Source of the DNA: Histomonas meleagridis 2922-C6/04-290x
Lineage: Eukaryota > Protista > Parabasalia
Assembly (NCBI GenBank): GCA_020184695.1
Contig: JAANOX010000263.1
Location: 1 to 28,498 of the forward strand
Length of the DNA stretch: 28,498 nucleotides
Direction of reading: 5' to 3'
A model generated the notes under the pieces. The model searched no databases. It was given only the letters and a program-made list of their open reading frames with translations, and was not told the origin of the DNA. The first letter of the stretch is position 1, and each line of letters opens with the position of its first letter. A program made the translations under genes and the position numbers. Of this stretch, positions 6,593 to 22,206 are shown piece after piece.

Positions 6593-8449
6593 TCATAAAA
6601 GAATACAATTAGAATTTTTGTTCCGAAGTAAATTTACTATTTCTATATTATTATTTCTAACTGCTATATGAAGTGCTGTTTCAAATTATTAAAACATATT
6701 CTAAATTATTAAAACATATTCCAAATTATTAAAACATATATAAAATTATTCAAATGAATATTTTTTGCATTAACATCAATTCCTTCTTTATCTAAAAGTA
6801 ATTTTACTATTTCTATATTATTATTTCTAACTGCTATATGAAGTGCTGTTTCAAATTATTAAAACATATTCTAAATTATTAAAACATATTTCAAATTATT
6901 GAAAAATATTCTAAATTATTAAAATATATTCTAAATTATTAAAACATATATAAAATTATTAAAACATATTCTAAATTATTAAAACATATTCCAAATTATT
7001 AAAACATATATAAAATTATTCAAATGAATATTTTTTGCATTAACATCAATTCCTTCTTTATCTAAAAGTAATTTTACTATTTCTATATTATTATTTCTAA
7101 CTGCAATATGAAGTGCTGTTCCAAATTATTAAAACATATTCCAAATTATTAAAACATATATCAAATTATTAAAACATATTTTAAATTCTTCAAATGGATA
7201 ATTCTTGCATTAACATCAATTTCTTTTTGTTCTAAAACATATTTCACAAGTTCGATATTTCCTGATTCTGAAGCAAATGGCAAAATATCTTTTGGAATTT
7301 GATTATTTTGAAGGAAATATTTCACGAGATATAAATTCTCATTTCTTGCTGATACATTTATATCATCAGCATTAACATTAATTCCTATTTCAGACAAAAA
7401 TGCTAAAGTTTCATAATTATCTTTTTTAATACAAAAACTTATCAAATTATTAGTTTTATCTTCAGATATTTTTGGTATTGATTGTATTTTTTCTAATTTA
7501 TTCTCATAAATATATTTAAAGATATCATTTTGATGAAACATAATTGCTGCACAATATGCACCCCTAAATAATGAATGATTTTGTTCACATAAATGAATAA
7601 TTTCAAGATTTCCGCTTGCAACTGCATATTTACCTGTATTTTCGACATTTGCACCGTTCATAAGTAAATATTTAAAACATTTAACCGATCCAAAAAATGC
7701 TGAATAATCAATTAATGTAACATTTTCATGATTAATAAATGAACATCTTTCATAAAGTGATGGTTCAATTGTTTGATTAAAATTAAAATTTGCTTGTGAT
7801 GAAATTTCTTGAAGGTTTTCTATTTCATCTTTTCGAATTATTTTTGCAATTTCAATCGGATTATGTCCTTCTTTAACATATTTCTTATGAAGTTCCCAAT
7901 CATTCTTTGAAAGTTCATCATAATGATCCAAAAAGTATTTTTTAATTGGGTCATTTCCATTAGAGCCAAATGTCATGTGGGTTTGTTTTTGATTTCCTTC
8001 TTTTGTTTTATAATGAGCAAAATATTTTGAATTAATATTTTCAGTAATACTTTTATCAATTAAATTTTGTTCAATCATTTTCTCTATTAAATAATATGAT
8101 TCTTGTGTGCTCATTGTAGATATACGTTTTATAAAAATTGATATTAAATTAGTGATTTTTGATTAATTTCTTCTTCTTTTGTTTGAAGTGTTTTTAAAAA
8201 ATTTAAGTAAATATCATATTTATGTTTTGGTGATGAAAATGTATTATAAACTAATTTACTTATAATAATATTAAATGTTGGAAAATTTGTATCGAATAAT
8301 TCCAATACTTTTTTAACCGACACCTGGTAGTTTTCTTCGGTTAAACTGAATACAATTTTCTCAAGCTCAATTAGGAATTTCAAGCAGGTTGATAGATCGT
8401 TCAACTTTTTATCTCCTGTATTTATGGTGGTAGTATCATCATTCGGCAT
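6593..8449 (-). CDS. DUF3447-type ankyrin repeat protein (locus A); one homopolymer frameshift (~8158) and three spacer-interrupted C-terminal ankyrin junctions
   Basis: ORFs 8144-8449 and 7161-8114 join if A5 becomes A6 and then align with the 18.8 kb paralog. The motifs TLIDYSAFFGSVKCFKYLL, AVASGNLEIIHLCEQ and AIMFHQNDIFKYI are typical of trichomonad DUF3447-ankyrin proteins. Further ankyrin exons at 7122-7030, 6852-6760 and 6682-6593 (TALHIAVRNNNIEIVKLLLDKEGIDVNAKN), ending in TGA. Confidence 0.8.
6683..7199 (-). repeat. Ankyrin units separated by arrays of a 20-nt repeat (NNN + ATATGTTTTAATAATTT); spacers of 77, 177 and 77 nt
   Basis: Spacers 7199-7123, 7029-6853 and 6759-6683 each consist of one 17-mer plus 3, 8 and 3 copies of the 20-mer. 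Confidence 0.9.
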
Positions 8450-8805
8450 TTAACTCTGTTTCGAACGTTACCGAATTTTCTTAACGTGCATTTTTGAACG
8501 ATACCAAATCCACATAATCAAAGATATTAAATATTGGGATAATTTATATATTATTTATACCAATACTAAGTGAGGGCATTAGGTTAGTCATTGTGTTGTA
8601 GTTATGTAGATGATATTTTCCAAGAAATTAAAATATTTTCTCAAATTTGCTTTAATTTTATATATAATATTAACGTACTTATGAAGTAAAAGGAACAATG
8701 TTTTATGTTTGAACTCGGATTTTTTTCCAAGATATTTGCGTTTGTTTACGCTCACTTACCGATCAAGTATTCAAAAAGCCACTATTTTTTTCGATTGATA
8801 TTATA

Positions 8806-11104
8806 TTACATAACTGTAAGTAATGTCACTATTTTAGTGTGGCCATTTTCAGAAACATTAATTAAAATAAATCAATGCTTTTGGTATTGAATTTGATTTC
8901 TCTTCTTGCAAGAAGTAATTTAGCTATTTATGTGTTCCCTTTTTCAGAAGTTATCATAAATGCTGTTAAATTTATTTATGTATATTAAATTTTTTAGTTA
9001 AAACATTAAAAAAATAAAAATAAAGTATTTATCATTGATTAATACATGATTTTTATCAAGATAATATTTAATGATATAATATTGATTAGATTCACATGAA
9101 TGCATAAATGAAATTATATTTGTTATTAGGAAATTCCTTAAATTACGAAACAACATCAATACTTTAAAAATTACACAAAATTTTCCAAATTAATATCTTT
9201 CATATAAATATCTGCATCTTTTTTAATGAGAGATTTAACAATTTTTATGTAACCACATGAAGATGCAAACATAATTGTTAACCAAAATAAATTAAATAAT
9301 TTCCAAATATCAGATGAAAATATTTTATTCCTTAAATAAATTTCAAATTTCAATAATTTAAATCTTTAGAATTAATATGAAATTGTTTTCGCTCAAGAAT
9401 TAAACGTACAATATTTTCCAATCCTTTGTTTGATGCAATTCTAAGTGCCTCATCAAACATTTTTATTAAACCATAAATAAAAATCATAAACCCAAAAATC
9501 AATATTACTAACATTTGTATTAATTCCTTCTTTCGTAGTAAATTCAGCAAGTGCATCAATAAGTTCCCCATCATAAATTTCATCATATTCTTGTTCTATT
9601 TTATCTTGATCTGTAATTAAAGGTTTTCCATCATCTTGAATCGCATTTTTATATATAAAATCATTGTATTGAGGTTTTTCTAATCTTTCTGTTATTGTCG
9701 TATATTCAGCAAAATTTTCTATTATATGTTTTTCAACATCACGATTATCACATTTCGTTGGAGCTCCATGAAGTAATCTATGTGAAGCATTCATTTTAAC
9801 AGCTTTATTATTTTGGATACGATCAATTATTGATATATAATTATCTAATGAATGATTACTGATATATTTTATTGACAACATTTATGTTTATCTTAATCAA
9901 GTCAGATGAAGATTTACCATTTGCAACTACTTTAGACATCAAAACTGTTTCTTTTCGAATATTACTTTTTTAATATTGATCTTGAATGTATACTAATTGA
10001 TCTGGAATTTCATAATTATTAATCATAATTTTTAATAAATACCTGATATTGTATCTGTTAAAGTTTCAAATGAAATTTTTCCTATGCTTTTGATTAAGGA
10101 AATTCCAGCATTTTTAACTAAAATCCAAAAGAAATTTGAAATATTAACTCCAATCGTATGACCTTTAGATGCAACAATATCATCAGTATTACATACTGTA
10201 ATAATAAATTTTTCCTTTAAATTTTCATTTCTAATTCTTGTGGCTAATGCATTGCAAACACATAGAGGTGTTCCAATTGTAAATGCTTTAGCATTAATGT
10301 GATCATTAAAACGCAAAAGTGCTGCAGCTATGGCTGCAATCGCTCCTCCACCAGAGTATCCAAAAATATTATTTCTTTGAAGTATTTCTCTTTAAAAACT
10401 CCTTTGAAATGTGAAGTAATATCATCTGCAGCTTTGCTGTAGCCTTTATGCGCTGGACAGCCTTCAATGACTTGACATTCTTGATTTTGCCTGGAGATCA
10501 TGATATCTTTTACTGAAGTAAGATCAGTGCCTTTAATCCATATAAAAATGGATTCATTTCCCCGGAGATCTTTACACGTTACACACCGAAAAATAGGTGT
10601 TATTTGTTCGACTGTGGTTACATCATATTTTTCTGAAACATTAAATGTATATTGATTAGATATTGTAATAACATTACGGGAATCACCTAATATTTTTATT
10701 TTTTTTATATAGTATCATTAGTTCAAGTGAAGATATTGTAGTTGTTATTTTAGGTATTTTCATAGGAGACAGCTGCATTTGCCTGAATTTAATTCTTTTA
10801 TGGGTAATGGAAAAAATGCCAATCAAACATTTCTTAATTGAAACAAAACAGTTATTTAAGTCAAAAACAATCCTGGATTGAATGGATACAACTTTTTGAG
10901 AAATATATGACAGTTTTTGAATGATATGGAACATCATTATACTTATATGATGTTAATGATAAACCCAAAAATATGAAAAAATAAAGTTTGCGTATTCTGA
11001 AATTTTCTCGGAAATATTTAAACAATGGTTTGTACAAATAAAGATAAATATGAATAAAAAATGATTTTAAAGAAAGATACAAACGAAACAAGATTACAAC
11101 TCAT
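8806..11104 (-). pseudogene. Class 3 lipase fused to C-terminal spacer-interrupted ankyrin repeats (locus B); multiply disrupted
   Basis: Stitched frames give IWIKGT, AHKGY, nucleophile elbow GYSGGGAIA, FTIGTP, NTDDIVA and NHSLDNY (His). About five ankyrin repeats follow (EALRIASNKG, TIMFASSCG, SFMHSCESN, TAFMITSEKG, LINVSENGH). Several indels and in-frame TAAs; the 5' end (ATG 11104) is approximate. Confidence 0.7.
9118..9361 (-). other. Two 77-nt spacers (9361-9285, 9194-9118) with 17+3+17+3+17+3+17 register
   Basis: They decode to SKD-E-N-G-W and MKD-C-D-G-I, with GGA exactly at the third embedded codon. Confidence 0.75.
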
Positions 11105-13914: not shown

Positions 13915-16900
13915 ATGAAAGAAGGACAAAATGAACAAACACTTACTAAAGAGCATCTTTTAGAATTTGTTTTAAAATCACTTGAAGGCAAAAATTCAAT
14001 TCTTGAAACTTATCCAATTTTATCTTCAAACTTTCCAGAGTATGAACCATCATATCTTTTCAATACTATTATACGACAACAATCATATGTTTTAATTTGT
14101 AATAATCGATTAAATGAAGCATCACGTCTTCTTGAAAGTATAGGAGAATCATCAACAGATTTTTTTTATAATATTTGGCGTCAAACGACACGTAATAATA
14201 CACGAGCAATTCTTTATGATTATCTTCATAAGCGTTCAATACTTACTACTAAAGATGAAGAACATCATCGAATTCTTTTAAAACTTACTACTACATATCC
14301 TAATACCTCATTTTTACGATCATTACAACTTAGTAAATCACCAGCTATTAAATTTCTTGAAAACACTCTTGAAGAAACGCCATATAAAACACTTGAAGAA
14401 CTTTCCAAACATTGTGATGGTTATAACATTACAATTTTTCCGGAACTTTTTCCTATTCCAGATGAACCAATTGTTAATTCGCCATTATATTTTGTTGGAA
14501 GTATTTCACTTATTGAAACACAACATCCGAAAATGCTGAAACTTTTACAAGGAAAAGGTTCACAAGTTGAACGTTATTGGCTTATGCATTGTCAGCATCA
14601 AGTTAATGAAATGACGCAATTATTTCAAGAAGAACTTAATTCTAAAAATAAATTATTACGTACACCTAAATTAAAATGTTTAAAATTTATAAATCTTTAT
14701 TATAAAGATTTAAATGAATATGAACGTGAAACATTTTTAAATTTATTATGTAACAATGGATATTTTTGTGAAGAAGAAATTAATAATTTTGAGTTATTAT
14801 TAATTCGAATTAGTAAAAATAAACATCTTTTTGAACAACAATGGTGGAATAAAAGTACACTTTCATTTTCTAATTTCTTTAAAGAATATTCCAAATATTG
14901 TGGCGAGAAAAAACTTTTTCTTCCATATGAAATGTTTATTCTTTCACATCCGAAAAGTAAAGATATTAATATTAAAGATGTTTCAGATCCGATGATTCAA
15001 TTTATATGGAATTTATGGGTCAAACGCGATATCTCATTAGCGTCACAGTCATGTATGGAAATGTTAACTAATAAAAAAATTAATCAAAATAATTTGATCG
15101 AAATATGGAATAATCTTCCGAAAGATTCATTAGCGCCTTTAGCTTCATTAATATGGAATAAAGATCCAACACTTTTTAAACCTAATTCTAAAGAAATTAA
15201 TGAATTATCAGAACATTTCAAAGATAATTATCCTCTTCTTTCTACATTAATTAAAGGAGAAATTCCACATCCGACAACTAAAGTAATTGACCCACCACAA
15301 AGTAAATGGCGTTCACCAATTTATACATCGAAATTTGACTTAGAAGTCCATGATTTGATTGAAACGCATTTTGAACAATTCGATTTTAATAAAATATTTA
15401 CTAAATATTATGGACAAACATTAAATCAGCCACCATATCCACACTTCGATCATCCAGAGTTAATTAATTCTAAACATGAAGCGCCATATTTTTATTATAT
15501 TAAATCATTATTACCAATTAGTGCATTTCAACAAGCGAATGAAGATAATATTAATGAAAATGAATTTAAAGAAATTTGTAACAAATGTATTACAGAATCA
15601 TTTCAAAATGTTCAAATTCGTTTATCAGTTTTAACATTTATTGAATTATTTGATATTAAATTTAACAAAGATTCATCGATTGATTACAAATTAATTATAA
15701 CAATTTATGATAACTTAAATAATAACAATAACAATAATAATAACAATAACGAAATTATAAATGAACTTTTAAAGATTTATAATGATAAAAATCAAAATAG
15801 TGTTAAAGTAATTCAAAATAAATTTAATGCGGAAAACATTGAACAATTTTTATTAATTACATTATTACGATATCGTTGCAAACTTTCTATTGATTATTCG
15901 CCGATTGTTTACTTTGCGCAACAAAATCGACCAGCGGAAATTCTTTTATTCATTGATCGAAGCAAAGAAATTGGGGTTTTTTATAATAACAATGAAATCT
16001 CAGATATTATCACAAAAGAAATGCCGAATAATCCACTTAAAGATCATCTTTTGTATTATCTTACGCAGAAATTACCGAAATATGAAAAAGAAAATGACGA
16101 AATAACGAATAATGAAAAAGAAGAACCCGCATTAATTATATATAATGCGATTCATCAAAATAAAGAATCGAAATATATTTTATTATTAAAAGAAGCACTT
16201 AAACGGAAAAACAAATTATATTCCATCATTGCATATTCGATTGAAGGATCGAATTCGATAATTTGTTCATTAGTTACACTTATTACAATATCAGAAACAT
16301 TTCAAGTTCAATTTGAAGAAATAAATTTCAACAATCCGAAAGAAAACGTTAAATTATTATTAGAAATCTTTTTAGAATTATTATTAAAACATAAATCAGA
16401 AGAAGTATATAAAACATTAGAAATATTTAGTGAAACGTCAATTTTAACAAATATTTCTAATTGGTATCATTCAGTTGAAATATTTGCATTTAAACAGAAT
16501 TACGTGTAAAACTTGTTGAAGTTATTGAAACGTTTGATGACTTTCGTCAAAGTATTATCAACACAGATTTACTTGGAAGTTATGAACGAATTGTTACAGA
16601 CTTAACATTACATCATTCATTATTACTTGGACAAAAGGCATCGAAATGTTTTGGCATTTCTACATCATTAGTTACCGATGAATATCTTAAATATCAATAT
16701 ACGACAGTTAATACTATTGACGAATTACTTAAAGTTCATAATAAGATCACGAAAACTATACAAAACATTGATCCATATTTTTATATTTCGATGTTTGGAT
16801 TATTACTTTCGTATACACAGCCAATGAATTTAATTGAAATATTAAAATTTTCACTTAAATATTTCAAAGATAATGAAGACAATGAAATCCAAAATAATGT

Positions 16901-18613
16901 TAAATCATTAATAAATCATTTAGAAATATGTGACAAATTTCATAAAGAAGTTCCTGAAGATCGAAACAATAAAATTCAACTTAATAACATCTTAAAAATA
17001 TTATTTCCAACGATATCAAATATTAATGAAATTAAACGCGAAATTACATTTAATATTAAAACTCCAATTTTATATTCAGAAGAATCAATTCAACGATTTC
17101 TTGAGTCTACGATTGACTTAAGTATAAATTATTGTTCAGACCATTTACGAATTACAGATGCGCGAAATCTTTGTAAATGGCGAAATCGAAATTCGCGAAA
17201 TATAATAATTCTAGAGACATTACAAAATATATTTAATGATATGAAACTTACAGACGAACAAACAGAAATTGTTAAAGAATATGGAACAATTGATGACATC
17301 GAAGGACTTTTATCTGAAATATCGAAAGGAAAAGAAAAACGATTTAAAATTATTTATTTAATATATAAAATATCGAATAAATTAAAATGGAACAAAAATG
17401 AAATATTAACTAAAAAGTTATTGATATCCTTAAAAATGAAATTATATTCCAACGAGAAAATTGGGGAATAATCAAAGAAATTCTTCAATTAAGTGATTTA
17501 AGTATCAAAGAAAGCACCGCAGCAATTGTCGAAACATTTATTATTAAAACGCCGAATTTATTAACAGAAGAATTCCAAGAAACATTCATTGAATTTAGTA
17601 ACTTAAGTGGCGATCAAGAAACATTTGGTGAAATATTATTTAATAAGACGCGAAAGATGAAACATGACGAAGAAAACATATCGAATGTTATAAACAATTA
17701 TCTTCATTCATCGATATGCACCATGAAAAACATTGATGGATGTTCAGAGATATTAAATAATTATTATAATATATTAACGAAAGATAATAACAATTTCGAA
17801 CTTATTCATAAAATGATAATAATATTTCCGAAGCCAGAACTATTAATTAAATATATCCAATATATAATAATGAATAATCAAATCGATTTATTAATACAAG
17901 AAAACAATTTAACAAAAGACATTTGTCATTTGATAATAAATTGTTATCGACACATGCGCCAAATTTGCGAACCACAAAAATTGTTTGACTTAACACTTAA
18001 ATTTCATCTTTATCGCGCGCACGGTGAATTACAAATGGAATATGCCGATTCGCTGTTAAGCAATAACACGAACAAAGCGCAGCTTCAAGAAGCGTCGAAA
18101 CATTATTTACTTTCGCTTTCGTATTTCTTACATGAGAAATGTTATAGTCTTTCGATGCGATGTCTGAAGAAACTTTCGCTTATATCACTTCAAGAAGTGA
18201 ATGAAAATAATTTAATAAATCTTCAGCAGAAAGAAGTCTTCGATTTGATGTGTACAAACGATTTTTCATGTTCAGTTATACTTGGAATTGCATATGATAT
18301 GGACAACGAAGAAATTTGGGGAAAAGTAATATTCAGACAATGCATCATGAACGGCAACGAAGAGTTTCTGAGTAACTTCCAATTGTTTAAGCCAATTACG
18401 TCGAATTTATGTATATCAGTTGCAAAGGAATATCAAAAAGAACAAAACAAAGAAATCGCAAAAGAAAAAATGAAACAATTTTTGTTGAATATATCAAATT
18501 TGATCGAAAGATATAAAATTGCAAAAGAATTACATTTTAATGATATCATAGAAACAATGAAATCGACATATCCGGTGGTATGCGAATGGTGTGAAAAAAT
18601 ATTGGAATATTAA
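13915..18613 (+). CDS. SPG11: Spatacsin (SPG11) homolog, about 1566 aa, split by two 1-nt deficits (~16492, ~17465)
   Basis: The three ORFs (13915-16509, 16791-17471, 17657-18613) join into one frame with two single-base additions, and the gaps are open in the downstream frame. The C-terminal region (LSYFLHEKCYSLSMRCLKKLSLISLQ; WGKVIFRQCIMNGNEEFLSNF) resembles the spatacsin C-terminal domain. Confidence 0.75.
15718..15750 (+). repeat. AAT/AAC microsatellite encoding poly-Asn (11 residues)
   Basis: aat aat aac aat aac aat aat aat aac aat aac, in frame in the SPG11-like ORF. Confidence 0.9.
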
Positions 18614-18839
18614 AAATGAATTTGTATTTTATTTTGTTTTTTTGAAATATTTTCGTTTTATTTTCAAATCGTTTCTATTAACGTTAAATGTTTATATTGC
18701 AAAATGTAAATATAATACTGATGATTAAATATTTTTTGTTAGAGTAATTTTAGGGCACCTGTAAAAGAACTTTTTTATTTTTGTTGTAAAGTATTTAAAT
18801 GTAATTTAGATTTCAAAAGAAACAAAGGATCACAACCAA

Positions 18840-19968
18840 ATGATAACTACTTCCTATTTGATCTTAAAAAATGAATGTTTAGAAAATCGATTTTTCATGG
18901 AACTCCTTTTAAAGTTAGAGAAAATTATCTTTATTTTAAAAGAAGAAAATTTTAATTTAATAGTTGAACAAACAATGAAATTATTTGATTGCATATTCAT
19001 TATGAAATTTCATTATAAGCAAATTGATTTATTTTGTATTTTTATCACAAAAGAATCTGGACAATATATATTATAAATATTTAGAAACAATTCAAACAAA
19101 AGAAGAAGAAATTAACAAAAATATTCAAAAAAAAATTATTGAAATTTTTACTAACATTTTGGTTGATATTAATTCACAAGAATCATTTTATATAATTGAG
19201 AAAATGATTATTCTAAATTTAATTAATAAAAGTATCATAAACAAATTTAATAATATTTTCTACAGAATCAAAAAATTCAGAACTTGTTAAATTTATATTA
19301 GAACAAAAAGGAACTGATATTAATGCTAAAAATATAAAATTTATTTTAATAATTTTATATTTCAAAATAATATTTGGAAATTATTTAAATTATTTGATAC
19401 AGCACTTATGATTGCATCTTCAAATGGTTATACAAAAATAGTTAAATTACTTCTTGAACAAGAAGGAATTGATATTAATGCTAAAGATATTTATTTGTTT
19501 TATTTAATATTTATTTTAATAATTTGGTAATTCAAAATAAGATTTGGAAATTATTTAAATTATTTAGAACAGCACTTATTTTAGCATCTCAAAATGGTCA
19601 TACAGAAATAGTTAAATTACTTCTTGAACAAGAAGGAATTGATGTTAATGCTAAAAATATTTATTTGTTTTATTTGATATTTATTTTAATAATTTCTTAT
19701 TTCAAAATAATATTTGGAAATTATTTAAATTATTTGATACAGCACTTATTTTAGCATCTTGGAATGGTCATACAAAAATAGTTAAATTACTTGTTGAACA
19801 AAACGGAATTGATATTAATGCTAAAGATATTTATTTGTTTTGTTTATAATTTATTTTAATAATTTTGGATTTCAAAACAAGATTTGGAAATTATTTAAGT
19901 TATTTCATACAGCACTTATTTCAGCATCTGAAAAAGGTTATACAGAAATAGTTAAATTATTTAAATAA
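18840..19968 (+). pseudogene. Internally deleted paralog of locus A (locus C): N-terminal domain joined directly to five spacer-interrupted ankyrin repeats
   Basis: The N-terminus (ELLLKLEKIIF..., QTKEEEINK..., QESFYIIEKM) aligns with 8449-8050, then jumps at ~19250 to FSTESKNSELVKFILEQKGTDINAKN. Ankyrin exons at 19396-19488, 19566-19658, 19736-19828 and 19906-19968 (TAA). Confidence 0.75.
19396..19905 (+). repeat. 170-bp tandem repeat (93-nt ankyrin exon + 77-nt spacer), three full units plus flanking partial units
   Basis: agcactt recurs at 19401, 19571, 19741 and 19911 (period 170). Confidence 0.95.
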
Positions 19969-20033
19969 AATTATAAAAAACTTTTAGAGGTAAATTTTAA
20001 AAGTGAATGTAATTATTCATTAACATTACCAAA

Positions 20034-21956
20034 TCAAAACGGATCAATTACTGAAAACGGATCTTTCGGCTGCTTCGCATCTGCTTCTTTTGCATTTCTT
20101 TGTTGGCTTGAGCCGAACATATTATATACGTTGCCATTATTTGCATCATTTCCTATCATATCAAACAAACCATTGTTTTGTTGCTGTTGTTTGCCATTAT
20201 CGAACACATCGAATAATTCGTTGTTTTGTTTTTGTGAATTTCCGTTATTAAACACATCGAATAATTCATTGTTTTGTTGCTGCTGCTGCTGCTGTTTTGG
20301 TTGTGATGTATTACTGCCGCTAAACATATCGAATAAGTCATTGTTTTGTTGCTGTGGCTGCGAAGAAGTTGGACGCTGTTGAGGTGGCGCATTGCCAAAG
20401 ATATCAAACAAGTCTTCGTTTTGCTGCTGTTGCTGCTGTGGCTTTGTTGCTTCATTATCTAAAATGTCGAATAAGTTGTTATTGTTATTTTGTTGCTGTT
20501 GCTGTTGAGAATTTGTTTTCTCATTGCCGAGAATATCAAACAAGTCATCGCTTTGTTGCGGTGGAACATTTTCTTTTGCGCTTTCATTGTCTAACATATC
20601 AAATAAGTCATTGTTTTGCTGTGAATTTGTGTTTGCGTTATCATTAGAAAAGATGTCTTTGGGTTGCTGTGGTTGAGCAGATTCGGAAATTGGCGTTTGT
20701 GAATCATCAATTACTCCGTCGTTACCAAGCATATCAAACAAGCCGCCGGTGCTGTTTGACGGATTTTGTGGTCGCGGCTGTGGAGGTGATTTCTGTGGTG
20801 GTTCTTGTGGTAGTTCATCATCATCAAATATAGATGTACTGTCAAGCATACCAAATGCGTCTTTTTGTGGAGGCCTTTTGTGTGGTTCATTTTGTCCATG
20901 ACGTTGTGGGGCATTTTGGATAGAAGTTGAAGTATATGGTTGATATGTTGGATTTGCTGGTTTTTCACTTTGACCTCCATAATGCTGTTGGATGTTGCTT
21001 GCAACTGAGGAGGCCTTCTCTTTGATGAAATTGGCGGTTTTGTTGAAGAATGATTTAAACTTATCTTTAGCATTTCTGATAGAAAAGTGATCATGGTCTT
21101 CAGTGTGTTGTTGGTGCTCTGGAAAGTAATCTGAGTCCTGATCTAGTCCTTCAAATGGGTCATATTGTTCTTCTGAGTTTCCGATTTCAGGGGTGCTCTG
21201 CTTTTGAACGTTTATTTCCGGAGGTTGTTTTTGAGTGAAAATTGGGTTCTCTCTTTGGGTGTTCCGAATAATTTGCGATGGATCAATATATAAGAAAGGA
21301 TTATTAATCTTCTCTGGTTTTGGTGTAGGTGTTGTTATTTCAATAGGATCACATAATTCATATGTTGAATCTCCAAATATGTTATTTTCTTCTTGAGCAG
21401 AAAATCCTCCAATAAGGTCTTCATTGCTACCATTAGAATTTGTTGGAAATCCGAATATATCTTGATTATTATTTTGATTGTTTGTAGATTGATAATCAAT
21501 CATATTGGGTGAATTAGCTTGGTCATTTTGTGTATGTTCTACTTTCCTCTTCCTTCTTTTACGACGTTCAGGTAGATGTGGTGGTTGCATTGAATGGTCA
21601 ACCCATTTTTCTTGTTCATACTTTTGACGAATAAACTTAGTCATATTTGTAACATCAGTTGATGAAGGTCTTTGGAAATCAGGTGGAAGAAGTGCCTCCC
21701 AATAAGCATTTGCTTTAGCATTACCAACTCTTTCCATCATCGCAGCTTCTTCTTCTTTCCATGTATCAAGTGTACATGAACGAACGAATGAAATATGCGT
21801 TCCTAAAGAACGGTGAATACCGCTGCAATTGATACAAATGAAAATTCCTAGTTTTGAAGAAGCCCATCTTGGATCTTTTGCACCACAGTCTGCACAACGT
21901 TGATTTTCTGGGAGGTTCATCAATGCTGTTACACGGCTCTTATAATCCACAGACAT
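20034..21956 (-). CDS. ArfGAP-domain protein (SMAP/AGFG-like) with low-complexity C-terminal tail, 640 aa
   Basis: Zn-finger CADC-x16-CINC with [12 protein letters not shown] and LDTW. The tail has NPF, DPF and repeated DLFD motifs. ATG 21956 (MSVDYK) follows an Inr-like TCATA; an upstream in-frame ATG (MSEEFW) is an alternative start. Confidence 0.92.
20100..20830 (-). repeat. Degenerate coding repeats: (Q)n-N-N-[DE/G]-L-F-D-[MIV]-[LF] motifs
   Basis: About ten LFD units separated by poly-Q/N linkers in the ArfGAP tail. Confidence 0.8.
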
Positions 21957-22206
21957 TTTGAATATGACCAGATAACCATTCAAAACGCAGTACGTTAAAA
22001 TTAACGTTTCCCAGAACTCTTCGCTCATATTAAAATACAGTAAATAAAATTGAAAAACAGAAGAAAACATCAAATGTTTCAATGGTTCACATCTTAATAT
22101 CTTTTGGAGAATATCACAATAATTTTAATGAAAAACACATAAACATTAATTAACATTTTATTTTGTTACAAAAGTCTGTTATTAATAAGAATAATAATAA
22201 TAATAA

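Follow-up and report, generated by a model that had tools for sequence, protein, structure and literature searches.

Seventeen-nucleotide elements between single hairpin codons in ankyrin repeat arrays of Histomonas meleagridis: candidate intervening sequences without known splice signals

How is an array of ankyrin repeats to be read when each repeat is parted from the next by an AT-rich gap at the place of the beta-hairpin? The question is raised by positions 19244-19968 of contig JAANOX010000263.1 (assembly GCA_020184695.1) of the parabasalid Histomonas meleagridis, whose intron-poor genome measures 43 Mb with 28% G+C (PMC8529796). The window analysed here, 28,498 nucleotides (nt) in length, is the entire contig, with the region around the array having a counterpart in a second strain (WSYJ01000075.1), and positions 18801-20040 being identical between both strains. 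Tandem Repeats Finder reports a tandem repeat with a 170-nt period at 19335-19959 (3.7 copies, 89% match), the unit of this array, termed copy 1, consisting of a 90-nt ankyrin core (T-A-L ... N-A-K-D/N) and the AT-rich gap, or spacer. A preliminary description had proposed that every spacer is built of 17-nt segments separated by single codons, and that these codons rebuild the hairpin once the segments are removed or skipped. Comparison of 82 junctions between cores shows an architecture conserved across paralogues and species, triplets that are free of stops and hairpin-like in order, and 17-mers that behave as units. It is also consistent with the triplets being read in frame with the cores, the 17-mers being discrete intervening elements that would be removed from RNA by a non-described route, a reading to which we give a little short of an even chance.

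Copy 1 is laid out as follows, the core scores being those of a profile hidden Markov model (HMM) of the 30-amino-acid (aa) core.

18840-19243, plus strand: degenerate N-terminal part of copy 1, with open reading frames (ORFs) 18840-19076 and 19024-19290 in different frames
19244-19333, plus strand: ankyrin core 0 (..STESKNSELVKFILEQKGTDINAKN), core HMM score 29.7
19334-19398, plus strand: 65-nt spacer, three 17-mers and 14 other bases
19399-19488, plus strand: ankyrin core 1 (TALMIASSNGYTKIVKLLLEQEGIDINAKD), core HMM score 72.0, Pfam Ank E=1.8e-8 over profile positions 3-32 of 33
19489-19568, plus strand: 80-nt spacer, parsed by dynamic programming into 17-mers 19489-19505, 19509-19525, 19529-19545 and 19549-19565 and codons AAT (19506-08), GGT (19526-28), GGA (19546-48) and AGA (19566-68), that is, N G G R
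19569-19658, plus strand: ankyrin core 2 (TALILASQNGHTEIVKLLLEQEGIDVNAKN), core HMM score 73.3, Pfam Ank E=2.7e-9
19659-19738, plus strand: 80-nt spacer, 17-mers 19659-75, 19679-95, 19699-715 and 19719-35, codons GAT, CTT, GGA and GAT (D L G D)
19739-19828, plus strand: ankyrin core 3 (TALILASWNGHTKIVKLLVEQNGIDINAKD), core HMM score 68.3, Pfam Ank E=4.6e-8
19829-19908, plus strand: 80-nt spacer, 17-mers 19829-45, 19849-65, 19869-85 and 19889-905, codons ATA, TGG, GGA and CAT (I W G H)
19909-19968, plus strand: C-terminal capping half-repeat TALISASEKGYTEIVKLFK, then stop codon TAA

The curated Pfam cut-off of 21.1 bits is exceeded by the Ank matches on unit ORFs 19330-19527, 19485-19751 and 19655-19846, which score 33-37 and span profile positions 3-32 only, with no complete, contiguous 33-residue Ank repeat found in copy 1. 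The missing profile positions 33, 1 and 2 coincide with the three inner single codons. The division 17|3|17|3|17|3|17, claimed in the preliminary description for every spacer, holds for the three 80-nt spacers, with the single-codon readings NGGR, DLGD and IWGH confirmed and the frame restored by removal of the 17-mers. It fails at the first spacer, which runs from 3' to 5' as GAT, 17-mer, GGA, 17-mer, TAT and 17-mer, with 5 nt (ATAAA) left over; the reading AKN-K-Y-G-D-TAL suggested there skips 2 nt, and the restoration of frame in all four units does not extend to this junction. With ~90% similarity among them, the four tandem copies amount to about a single observation, and the 17+3 register is also expected from a 20-nt repeat, a period that Tandem Repeats Finder sees in copy 1.

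The two N-terminal ORFs of copy 1 both resemble the N-terminal region of copy 2, a further family member in the window, and of the homologues P0002 and P0043. The central DUF3447 part (~250 aa) is absent, and the N-terminal part carries two frame breaks and a large deletion, in addition to the 65-nt junction. Because its N-terminal domain is mostly lost and one junction cannot be framed, copy 1 is, as judged from its sequence, probably a dead, recently duplicated family member, and the label "encrypted rather than junk" probably does not suit it. Natural ends of the type formed by its capping half-repeat are also found in copy 2 and in locus L005.

A protein search for homologues with the N-terminal ORF of copy 2 as query returned two annotated Histomonas paralogues and 50-58% identical ORFs on short ENA metagenome contigs, with nearly all of the metagenome ORFs ending just past the first "INAKD". 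In L003, L017, P0001-P0003 and P0044 the ORF stops two codons into the first spacer (..D/N-I-stop, ATT TAA), the product of which would, in the event of no processing, be the N-terminal domain and the first ankyrin repeats. The contigs of seven metagenome proteins, of the two Histomonas paralogues, and of one distant relative (from a Logan assembly) were compared, with the core HMM locating cores on all loci and giving 82 junctions with well-placed boundaries, drawn from the window, from a further two Histomonas loci, and from relatives in metagenomes. The gaps measure 80 nt at 46 junctions, 63 nt at eight, 60 nt at seven, 83 nt at four, and 26 nt at three, with single cases besides, and fall by length modulo 3 into class 2 (57), class 0 (19), and class 1 (6). 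A 12-nt gap in L007, outside the 82, encodes an ordinary hairpin, K-N-G-F. The searches for homologues returned no transcript-derived or spacer-free versions, only genome and metagenome ORFs that stop in or cross spacers. A pattern scan of metagenome DNA gave a sole match, L010 10175-10217 (JGI Ga0209633_10002071), which lacks ankyrin cores and was rejected as an AT-rich chance match, and a scan of the window with a 17-mer weight matrix was also set aside, the matrix being too low in complexity for specificity outside the ankyrin loci.

The 46 spacers of 80 nt align without gaps as four distinct, conserved module types of 17+3 nt, with each 17-mer T-rich on the sense strand, starting R-TTT and ending A-TTT, and conserved at either end, the triplets being the least conserved part of each module. 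Triplet 1 encodes K or N in 26 of the 46, triplet 2 encodes N or D in 21, triplet 3 encodes Gly in 37 (GGA 29, GGT 5, GGG 3), and triplet 4 mostly K, W or E, giving strings such as KDGK, NDGW, KYGW, and ENGW. The enrichment of Gly that had been predicted at the third embedded codon is borne out within these spacers of Histomonas and its metagenome relatives, rather than genome-wide, and, set against the ankyrin consensus, the order of the triplets is that of its x-[D/N]-G-x hairpin. None of the 184 triplets is a stop, compared with 10.4 expected when the columns are shuffled independently, with avoidance at the fourth (7.0 expected, P=1e-4), at the first (2.3 expected, P=0.04), and at triplets 1-3 together (3.4 expected, P=0.012). 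Across 12 phylogenetically independent close pairs the differences per site amount to 0.37 in triplets, 0.23 in 17-mers, 0.23 in cores, and 0.28 at core third positions; by this comparison the triplets are the fastest-changing positions, yet stop-free. Furthermore, the distance between 17-mers correlates with that between cores over all pairs (r=0.41), and the 17-mers, which are conserved in nucleotide sequence, were therefore duplicated with the cores and in place while the repeats diverged.

The variation in gap length points to the 17-mers as discrete units. A weight matrix built from them gives true elements a mean of 6.0 bits and other registers -8.7, with dynamic programming used to parse gaps into "17-mer" and "codon". 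By this parse an 83-nt gap holds four elements and five codons, the additional codon adjoining a triplet and the elements remaining intact, and a 63-nt gap holds three elements and four codons, with the first, middle, or last element lost, varying by case. Gaps of 60, 46, 26, and 23 nt resolve into 3+3, 2+4, 1+3, and 1+2 elements and codons respectively, and the element-free gaps of 9 nt and 12 nt (the latter in L007) into three codons and four codons (KNGF), such that the codon count stays at 3-5 (2 once) irrespective of the number of elements. One junction type in L008 reads AAA-GTC-[17]-CGA, or AAA-ATA-[17]-AGA / -CGA, at three places, with a fourth place showing the matching type free of the element, AAA-GTT-AGA. 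The two forms, of 26 nt and 9 nt, are paralogous junctions distinguished by one 17-mer, the flanks encoding K V R with two codons respelt. As far as paralogous junctions can be compared, the 17-mers are shown to be gained and lost whole, at codon boundaries.

Were the arrays dead, as pseudogenes or as an ankyrin-derived 170-bp satellite in whose hairpin a 20-nt AT-rich repeat grew, the triplets would be a fading relic, a view favoured by the richness of trichomonad genomes in pseudogenes. The spacer-bearing arrays carry no gene annotation in either Histomonas assembly, the protein searches gave no homologous transcript-derived protein, copies 1 and 2 have N-terminal frame breaks, and some arrays (L008 12.5-15.8 kb, L009) show stops in cores and odd gap lengths of 64, 73, 82, and 91 nt. 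Taken over the arrays, the 43 cores adjoining 80-nt gaps nevertheless contain only 6 stops in the ankyrin frame, compared with 83 and 191 in the other frames, with all 23 cores of L007 and L012 open, and the flanking cores open and ankyrin-like across arrays of 10-20 repeats. The arrays are preceded by an intact N-terminal DUF3447 ORF and closed by a capping half-repeat and a stop, and substitutions between close pairs are codon-structured in the cores (88/58/102 by codon position), whereas those in the spacers have no three-base periodicity (76/78/86). Additionally, the spacers are common to all units, paralogues, and species, and so predate the divergence of the units (mean distance between cores 0.39); the cores have therefore been kept open despite the spacers, which argues against a simple dead repeat, as does the change of the triplets at the fastest rate with no stop gained. 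This is the only alternative that would be ordinary, and with core conservation arguing against it we regard it as unlikely. Nei-Gojobori dN/dS values for cores and spacers were dropped, the AT-rich data being saturated and the cores giving 0.63 in the true frame and 0.62 in a wrong frame.

The reading that we prefer treats the spacer as a row of 17-nt T-rich elements (consensus R-TTT ... A-TTT) lying exactly between codons, with those codons supplying the missing hairpin residues x, D/N, G, and x, equivalent to Pfam Ank positions 33, 1, 2, and 3. The family would be, or until recently would have been, expressed as ordinary 33-34-aa ankyrin repeats. If the triplets share the reading frame of the cores, then the 17-mers must be removed or skipped; each may be excised as a tiny non-canonical intron, leaving exons of one codon, or be skipped by another route, with removal from RNA being the route that we favour. 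Of the 82 junctions 72 are compatible with removal of the 17-mers, including 30/31 and 18/19 in arrays with intact cores. The earlier assignment of the triplets as hairpin codons and the 17-mers as intervening sequence thus holds up across the 82 junctions, which come from several paralogous arrays in at least three organisms, with the removal itself a proposal drawn from these sequences. We extend the reading more tentatively, and with somewhat less confidence, to the proposition that hundreds of 17-nt non-GT-AG elements are removed from the message, leaving single-codon exons, in nuclear ankyrin genes of Histomonas-clade parabasalids.

Several observations weigh against removal of the 17-mers. 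We know of no precedent for one-codon exons between 17-nt introns, and the removal or skipping is suggested by comparison of genomic letters. The junctions are paralogues and not independent samples, and both the weight matrix and the parse were trained on the 80-mers, making the parse of 46/46 partly circular. The 81-nt junction in L008 does not fit the parse, and the 65-nt junction of copy 1 stays out of frame after removal of its 17-mers. Stop avoidance lies mainly in codons 4 and 1, which are also in frame if the spacer is translated, with codons 2 and 3 giving the stop test no statistical power, and Gly at codon 3 corresponds to an equally conserved TGG in the downstream frame. With 22/46 of the 80-nt spacers open in that frame, and the natural ORFs P0030-P0034 and P0043 crossing spacers of 60-81 nt, the translation of the spacers, considered below, is therefore weakened only. 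The elements also fit, on their sequence features, no known removal machinery. GT..AG ends are found in 0/184 17-mers at registers -3 to +3, the 5' ends being AT in 93/184 and GT in 52/184 and the 3' ends TT in 134/184, and the branch motif CTAAC is found in 0/184, the branch/3' motif of parabasalid introns being (A/T)CTAAC..ACAG (PMC12316389). Furthermore, RNAalifold finds no consensus pairs in the spacers, with a mean z-score of -0.2.

Amongst the candidates tried and rejected were canonical GT..AG introns, none of which fits in any register or over the whole spacer; "ACAG" as a 3' splice site, given that the T codon varies (ACA, ACG, ACC, AAT); and U12-like AT..AC boundaries, found in 0/184 and with lengths that give the wrong frame. 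Very small spliceosomal introns, such as those of Stentor (15-16 nt) and the Bigelowiella nucleomorph (18-21 nt), share with the 17-mers their tiny size, AU-richness, narrow length range, position within coding sequence, and precise gain or loss at codon boundaries. However, the known tiny introns are all GT..AG, those of trichomonads having in addition an extended 5' motif and a fused branch/3' motif, with neither GT..AG nor CTAAC seen in any of the 184 17-mers, and they are not known to be spaced by 3-nt exons. Trichomonad genes usually have a single intron and never more than two (three genes in T. stableri). The Fritillaria AG-AC/AG-AT introns and the non-conventional introns of Euglena lack GT..AG and form families alike in sequence, as do the 17-mers, but they far exceed the 17-mers in length, possess defined ends or end-pairing structures of their own, and show no single-codon spacing. 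The type B introns of Trichomonas measure 23-28 nt (PMC12316389). Translational bypassing, as in phage T4 gene 60 and the mitochondrial "byps" of Magnusiomyces capitatus, also involves short non-coding inserts with their flanks joined in frame; it requires matching take-off and landing codons, which the 17-mers lack (1/184 matching with the element's last triplet, 14/184 with the following codon), and four hops per repeat in nuclear genes are implausible. As the preliminary description had supposed, no account of this architecture was found in the literature on Histomonas and parabasalid ankyrins or on non-canonical introns.

Could the whole spacer, or the stretch from its first R-TTT to its last A-TTT, be one non-canonical intron bearing a 20-nt minisatellite, the inner triplets of which are never read? 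We think this improbable. The spacers are T-rich on the sense strand, like the introns of AT-rich protists, and a 20-nt unit divides evenly into the lengths of 60, 80, and 180 nt, with copy 2 showing recent expansion to nine modules. A minisatellite within the gene would account for the 20-nt period and for those nine near-identical modules, but does not predict four conserved module types, a hairpin-like triplet order, or steps of presence and absence of 17 rather than 20 nt. A single intron would also leave unexplained the Gly at triplet 3, the N/D at triplet 2, the missing stops in triplets 1-3, the 17-nt differences between gaps (80 vs 63, 26 vs 9), and the extra codons adjoining triplets; the hairpin length would range over 1-4 residues by gap type, compared with 3-5 under removal of the 17-mers, and such an intron would likewise lack GT..AG and the parabasalid branch/3' motif (PMC12316389).

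A further observation in favour of a single intron comes from the distant relative L015 2250-3403 (Logan SRR19599918), which has 37% identity to the N-terminal ORF of copy 2. Its gaps of 61, 177, and 296 nt each hold a single U-rich insertion, much longer than a 17-mer, at the matching repeat position, some initiated by GT or ending ..TTTTATAG, with the hairpin codons contiguous after the insertion. Because these insertions lie at the same repeat position, their comparison with the spacers suggests that an intervening sequence at this place in the ankyrin repeat is old. Such an old sequence may have shrunk to 17 nt in the Histomonas clade and multiplied between the hairpin codons. L015 also has one in-frame 36-nt gap, encoding ..VFSFIYFNAEMQ...

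The spacers may, on the other hand, be coding, with a hydrophobic insertion of 20-27 aa (..IYFNNxxFQNNIWxLFxLFx) replacing the hairpin and sharing its frame with the repeat that follows. No shift would then be needed at gaps of 60, 63, and 81 nt, whereas those of 80 or 83 nt would call for a -1 ribosomal frameshift near the start of the spacer. Translation of this kind we consider quite improbable. In its favour, 22/46 spacers are open from end to end in the downstream frame, compared with 8 and 0 in the other frames, a peptide ..IYFNN..FQNNIW.LF.LF. recurs, and metagenome ORFs P0030-P0034 and the complete gene P0043 cross 60-81-nt spacers in frame. The gaps of arrays with intact cores fall only into classes 0 and 2 modulo 3, with +3, -15, and +1 variants, and in L003 the -1 shift that is needed can lie only within the first few bases of the spacer. 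Frameshifting by -1 is increased when diphthamide is lost. Parabasalids lack diphthamide genes (PMC6143161, the text of which is silent on frameshifting), and 923 "split" genes of T. vaginalis have been ascribed to frameshifts (bioRxiv 10.64898/2026.08.31.748405).

Against translation of the spacers, only 49/82 junctions can be crossed from the upstream into the downstream frame with no stop on the way, the figure for spacers of class 2 modulo 3 being 37/53, and every long array with intact cores has blocked junctions (two in L007, two in L012, eight in array 2 of L008) with the downstream cores open. Several third codons other than Gly (GAA, AAA, AGA, GAT) produce TGA, TAA or TAG in the downstream frame, and the spacer substitutions lack the three-base periodicity of the cores. 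Multi-site programmed frameshifting, known as +1 in Euplotes and -1 in viruses, likewise joins successive ORF pieces in different frames, as the 57/82 gaps of class 2 would demand; unlike such systems, the spacers have no conserved slippery site or stimulatory structure, with an in-frame XXXYYYZ heptamer in only 15/46, at no fixed place and with no structure downstream, and stops in the target frame occur at a third of junctions. Each protein would require 10-20 consecutive frameshifts, and translation offers no account of why gap length minus 17k stays near 12 nt.

Handling at the DNA level, whether by precise excision in some cells or stages or with the arrays as silent recombination donors for an expressed ankyrin gene, would suit the presence or absence of individual 17-mers between paralogous junctions and the flanking of hypervariable codons by conserved 17-mers, and Paramecium-type internal eliminated sequences are also short, AT-rich inserts in coding sequence that are precisely removed, but this is very improbable. 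The Paramecium sequences are TA-bounded and cut from DNA in the somatic nucleus, whereas TA stands at both boundaries of only 16/184 17-mers. The 17-mers are retained in the two assemblies made from cultures as well as in every metagenome contig, and no array was found to have a twin lacking the spacers. Programmed DNA elimination is not known in parabasalids.

Parabasalids are credited with no more than a few dozen validated introns, each of which carries strict extended motifs. If the 17-mers are removed from RNA as proposed, they would form a second, unrelated class of intervening sequence at the lower physical size limit, with one-codon exons, which would be new for any eukaryote, and would make testable the general question of how short an intervening sequence can be and stay recognisable, and by what machinery. 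Each residue at the target-binding tip of the hairpin would lie on its own micro-exon, such that gain, loss, or alternative removal of elements could vary both the length and the sequence of the loop. Serial -1 frameshifting, motif-less introns of 60-80 nt, and DNA-level removal would each also be unusual for a nuclear gene. Arrays of 3-8 kb have no annotation in either Histomonas assembly, and current gene models and proteome databases therefore miss some of the ankyrin repertoire of this poultry pathogen, as they probably also do for its gut-dwelling relatives. Two such arrays, of ~3.3 kb each, lie downstream of an annotated "caskin" gene in L008 12500-20850 (WSYJ01000186.1) and lack a gene model; several cores of the first contain stops and its gaps are irregular, and the second is intact.

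The window holds two further copies of the family, as follows.

6593-8449, minus strand: ankyrin copy 2 (DUF3447 + Ank), with Pfam DUF3447 and Ank/Ank_2 on ORF 8114-7164
7199-7120, minus strand: 80-nt spacer of copy 2, K D G G
7029-6850, minus strand: 180-nt spacer of copy 2, nine near-identical 20-nt modules, YGRYRRERE
6759-6680, minus strand: 80-nt spacer of copy 2, Y G R E
8782-9881, minus strand: ankyrin copy 3, with an 80-nt spacer at 9361-9282, identified by core HMM matches, ORFs, and weak Pfam Ank

The gaps of copy 2 consist of 4, 9, and 4 near-identical 20-nt modules, with the 20-nt period much clearer than in copy 1. Each module of the spacer at 7029-6850 is the 17-mer ATATGTTTTAATAATTT and a triplet; this nine-module spacer is a recent tandem expansion, and under the single-codon reading would give a 9-residue loop, YGRYRRERE. 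In the N-terminal region of copy 2, a 1-nt frame break at an A-run near 8150 (..AATCAAAAATCACT..) separates ORFs 8449-8144 and 8114-7161. The homologues are uninterrupted across this site, and the break may reflect either a genuine mutation or a homopolymer error in the long-read assembly. Copy 3 has weaker cores, some with stops, and is partly decayed.

The neighbouring genes in the window are ordinary eukaryotic genes in the standard code, encoding an ABC transporter, a spatacsin-like protein, an ArfGAP, a tRNA methyltransferase, a PH-domain kinase, and a Pumilio protein; their long standard-code ORFs exclude a ciliate code or stop reassignment. Covariance models of Rfam 15 gave 0 matches in the window at gathering score, and a tRNA scan of the window 0 tRNAs. 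The spatacsin-like gene at 13915-18613 (plus strand) comprises three successive ORFs (13915-16509, 16791-17471, and 17657-18613), with a Pfam match (Spatacsin_C) on the last only; the gaps of ~280 and ~185 nt between them could be introns, frame breaks, or boundaries of separate genes. The ArfGAP protein, at 20034-22082 on the minus strand, has a long Q/N-rich tail with recurrent ..NN(D/E)LFD(M/I/V)(L/F)xN.. motifs, which correspond to 48-nt tandem repeats at 20171-20282.

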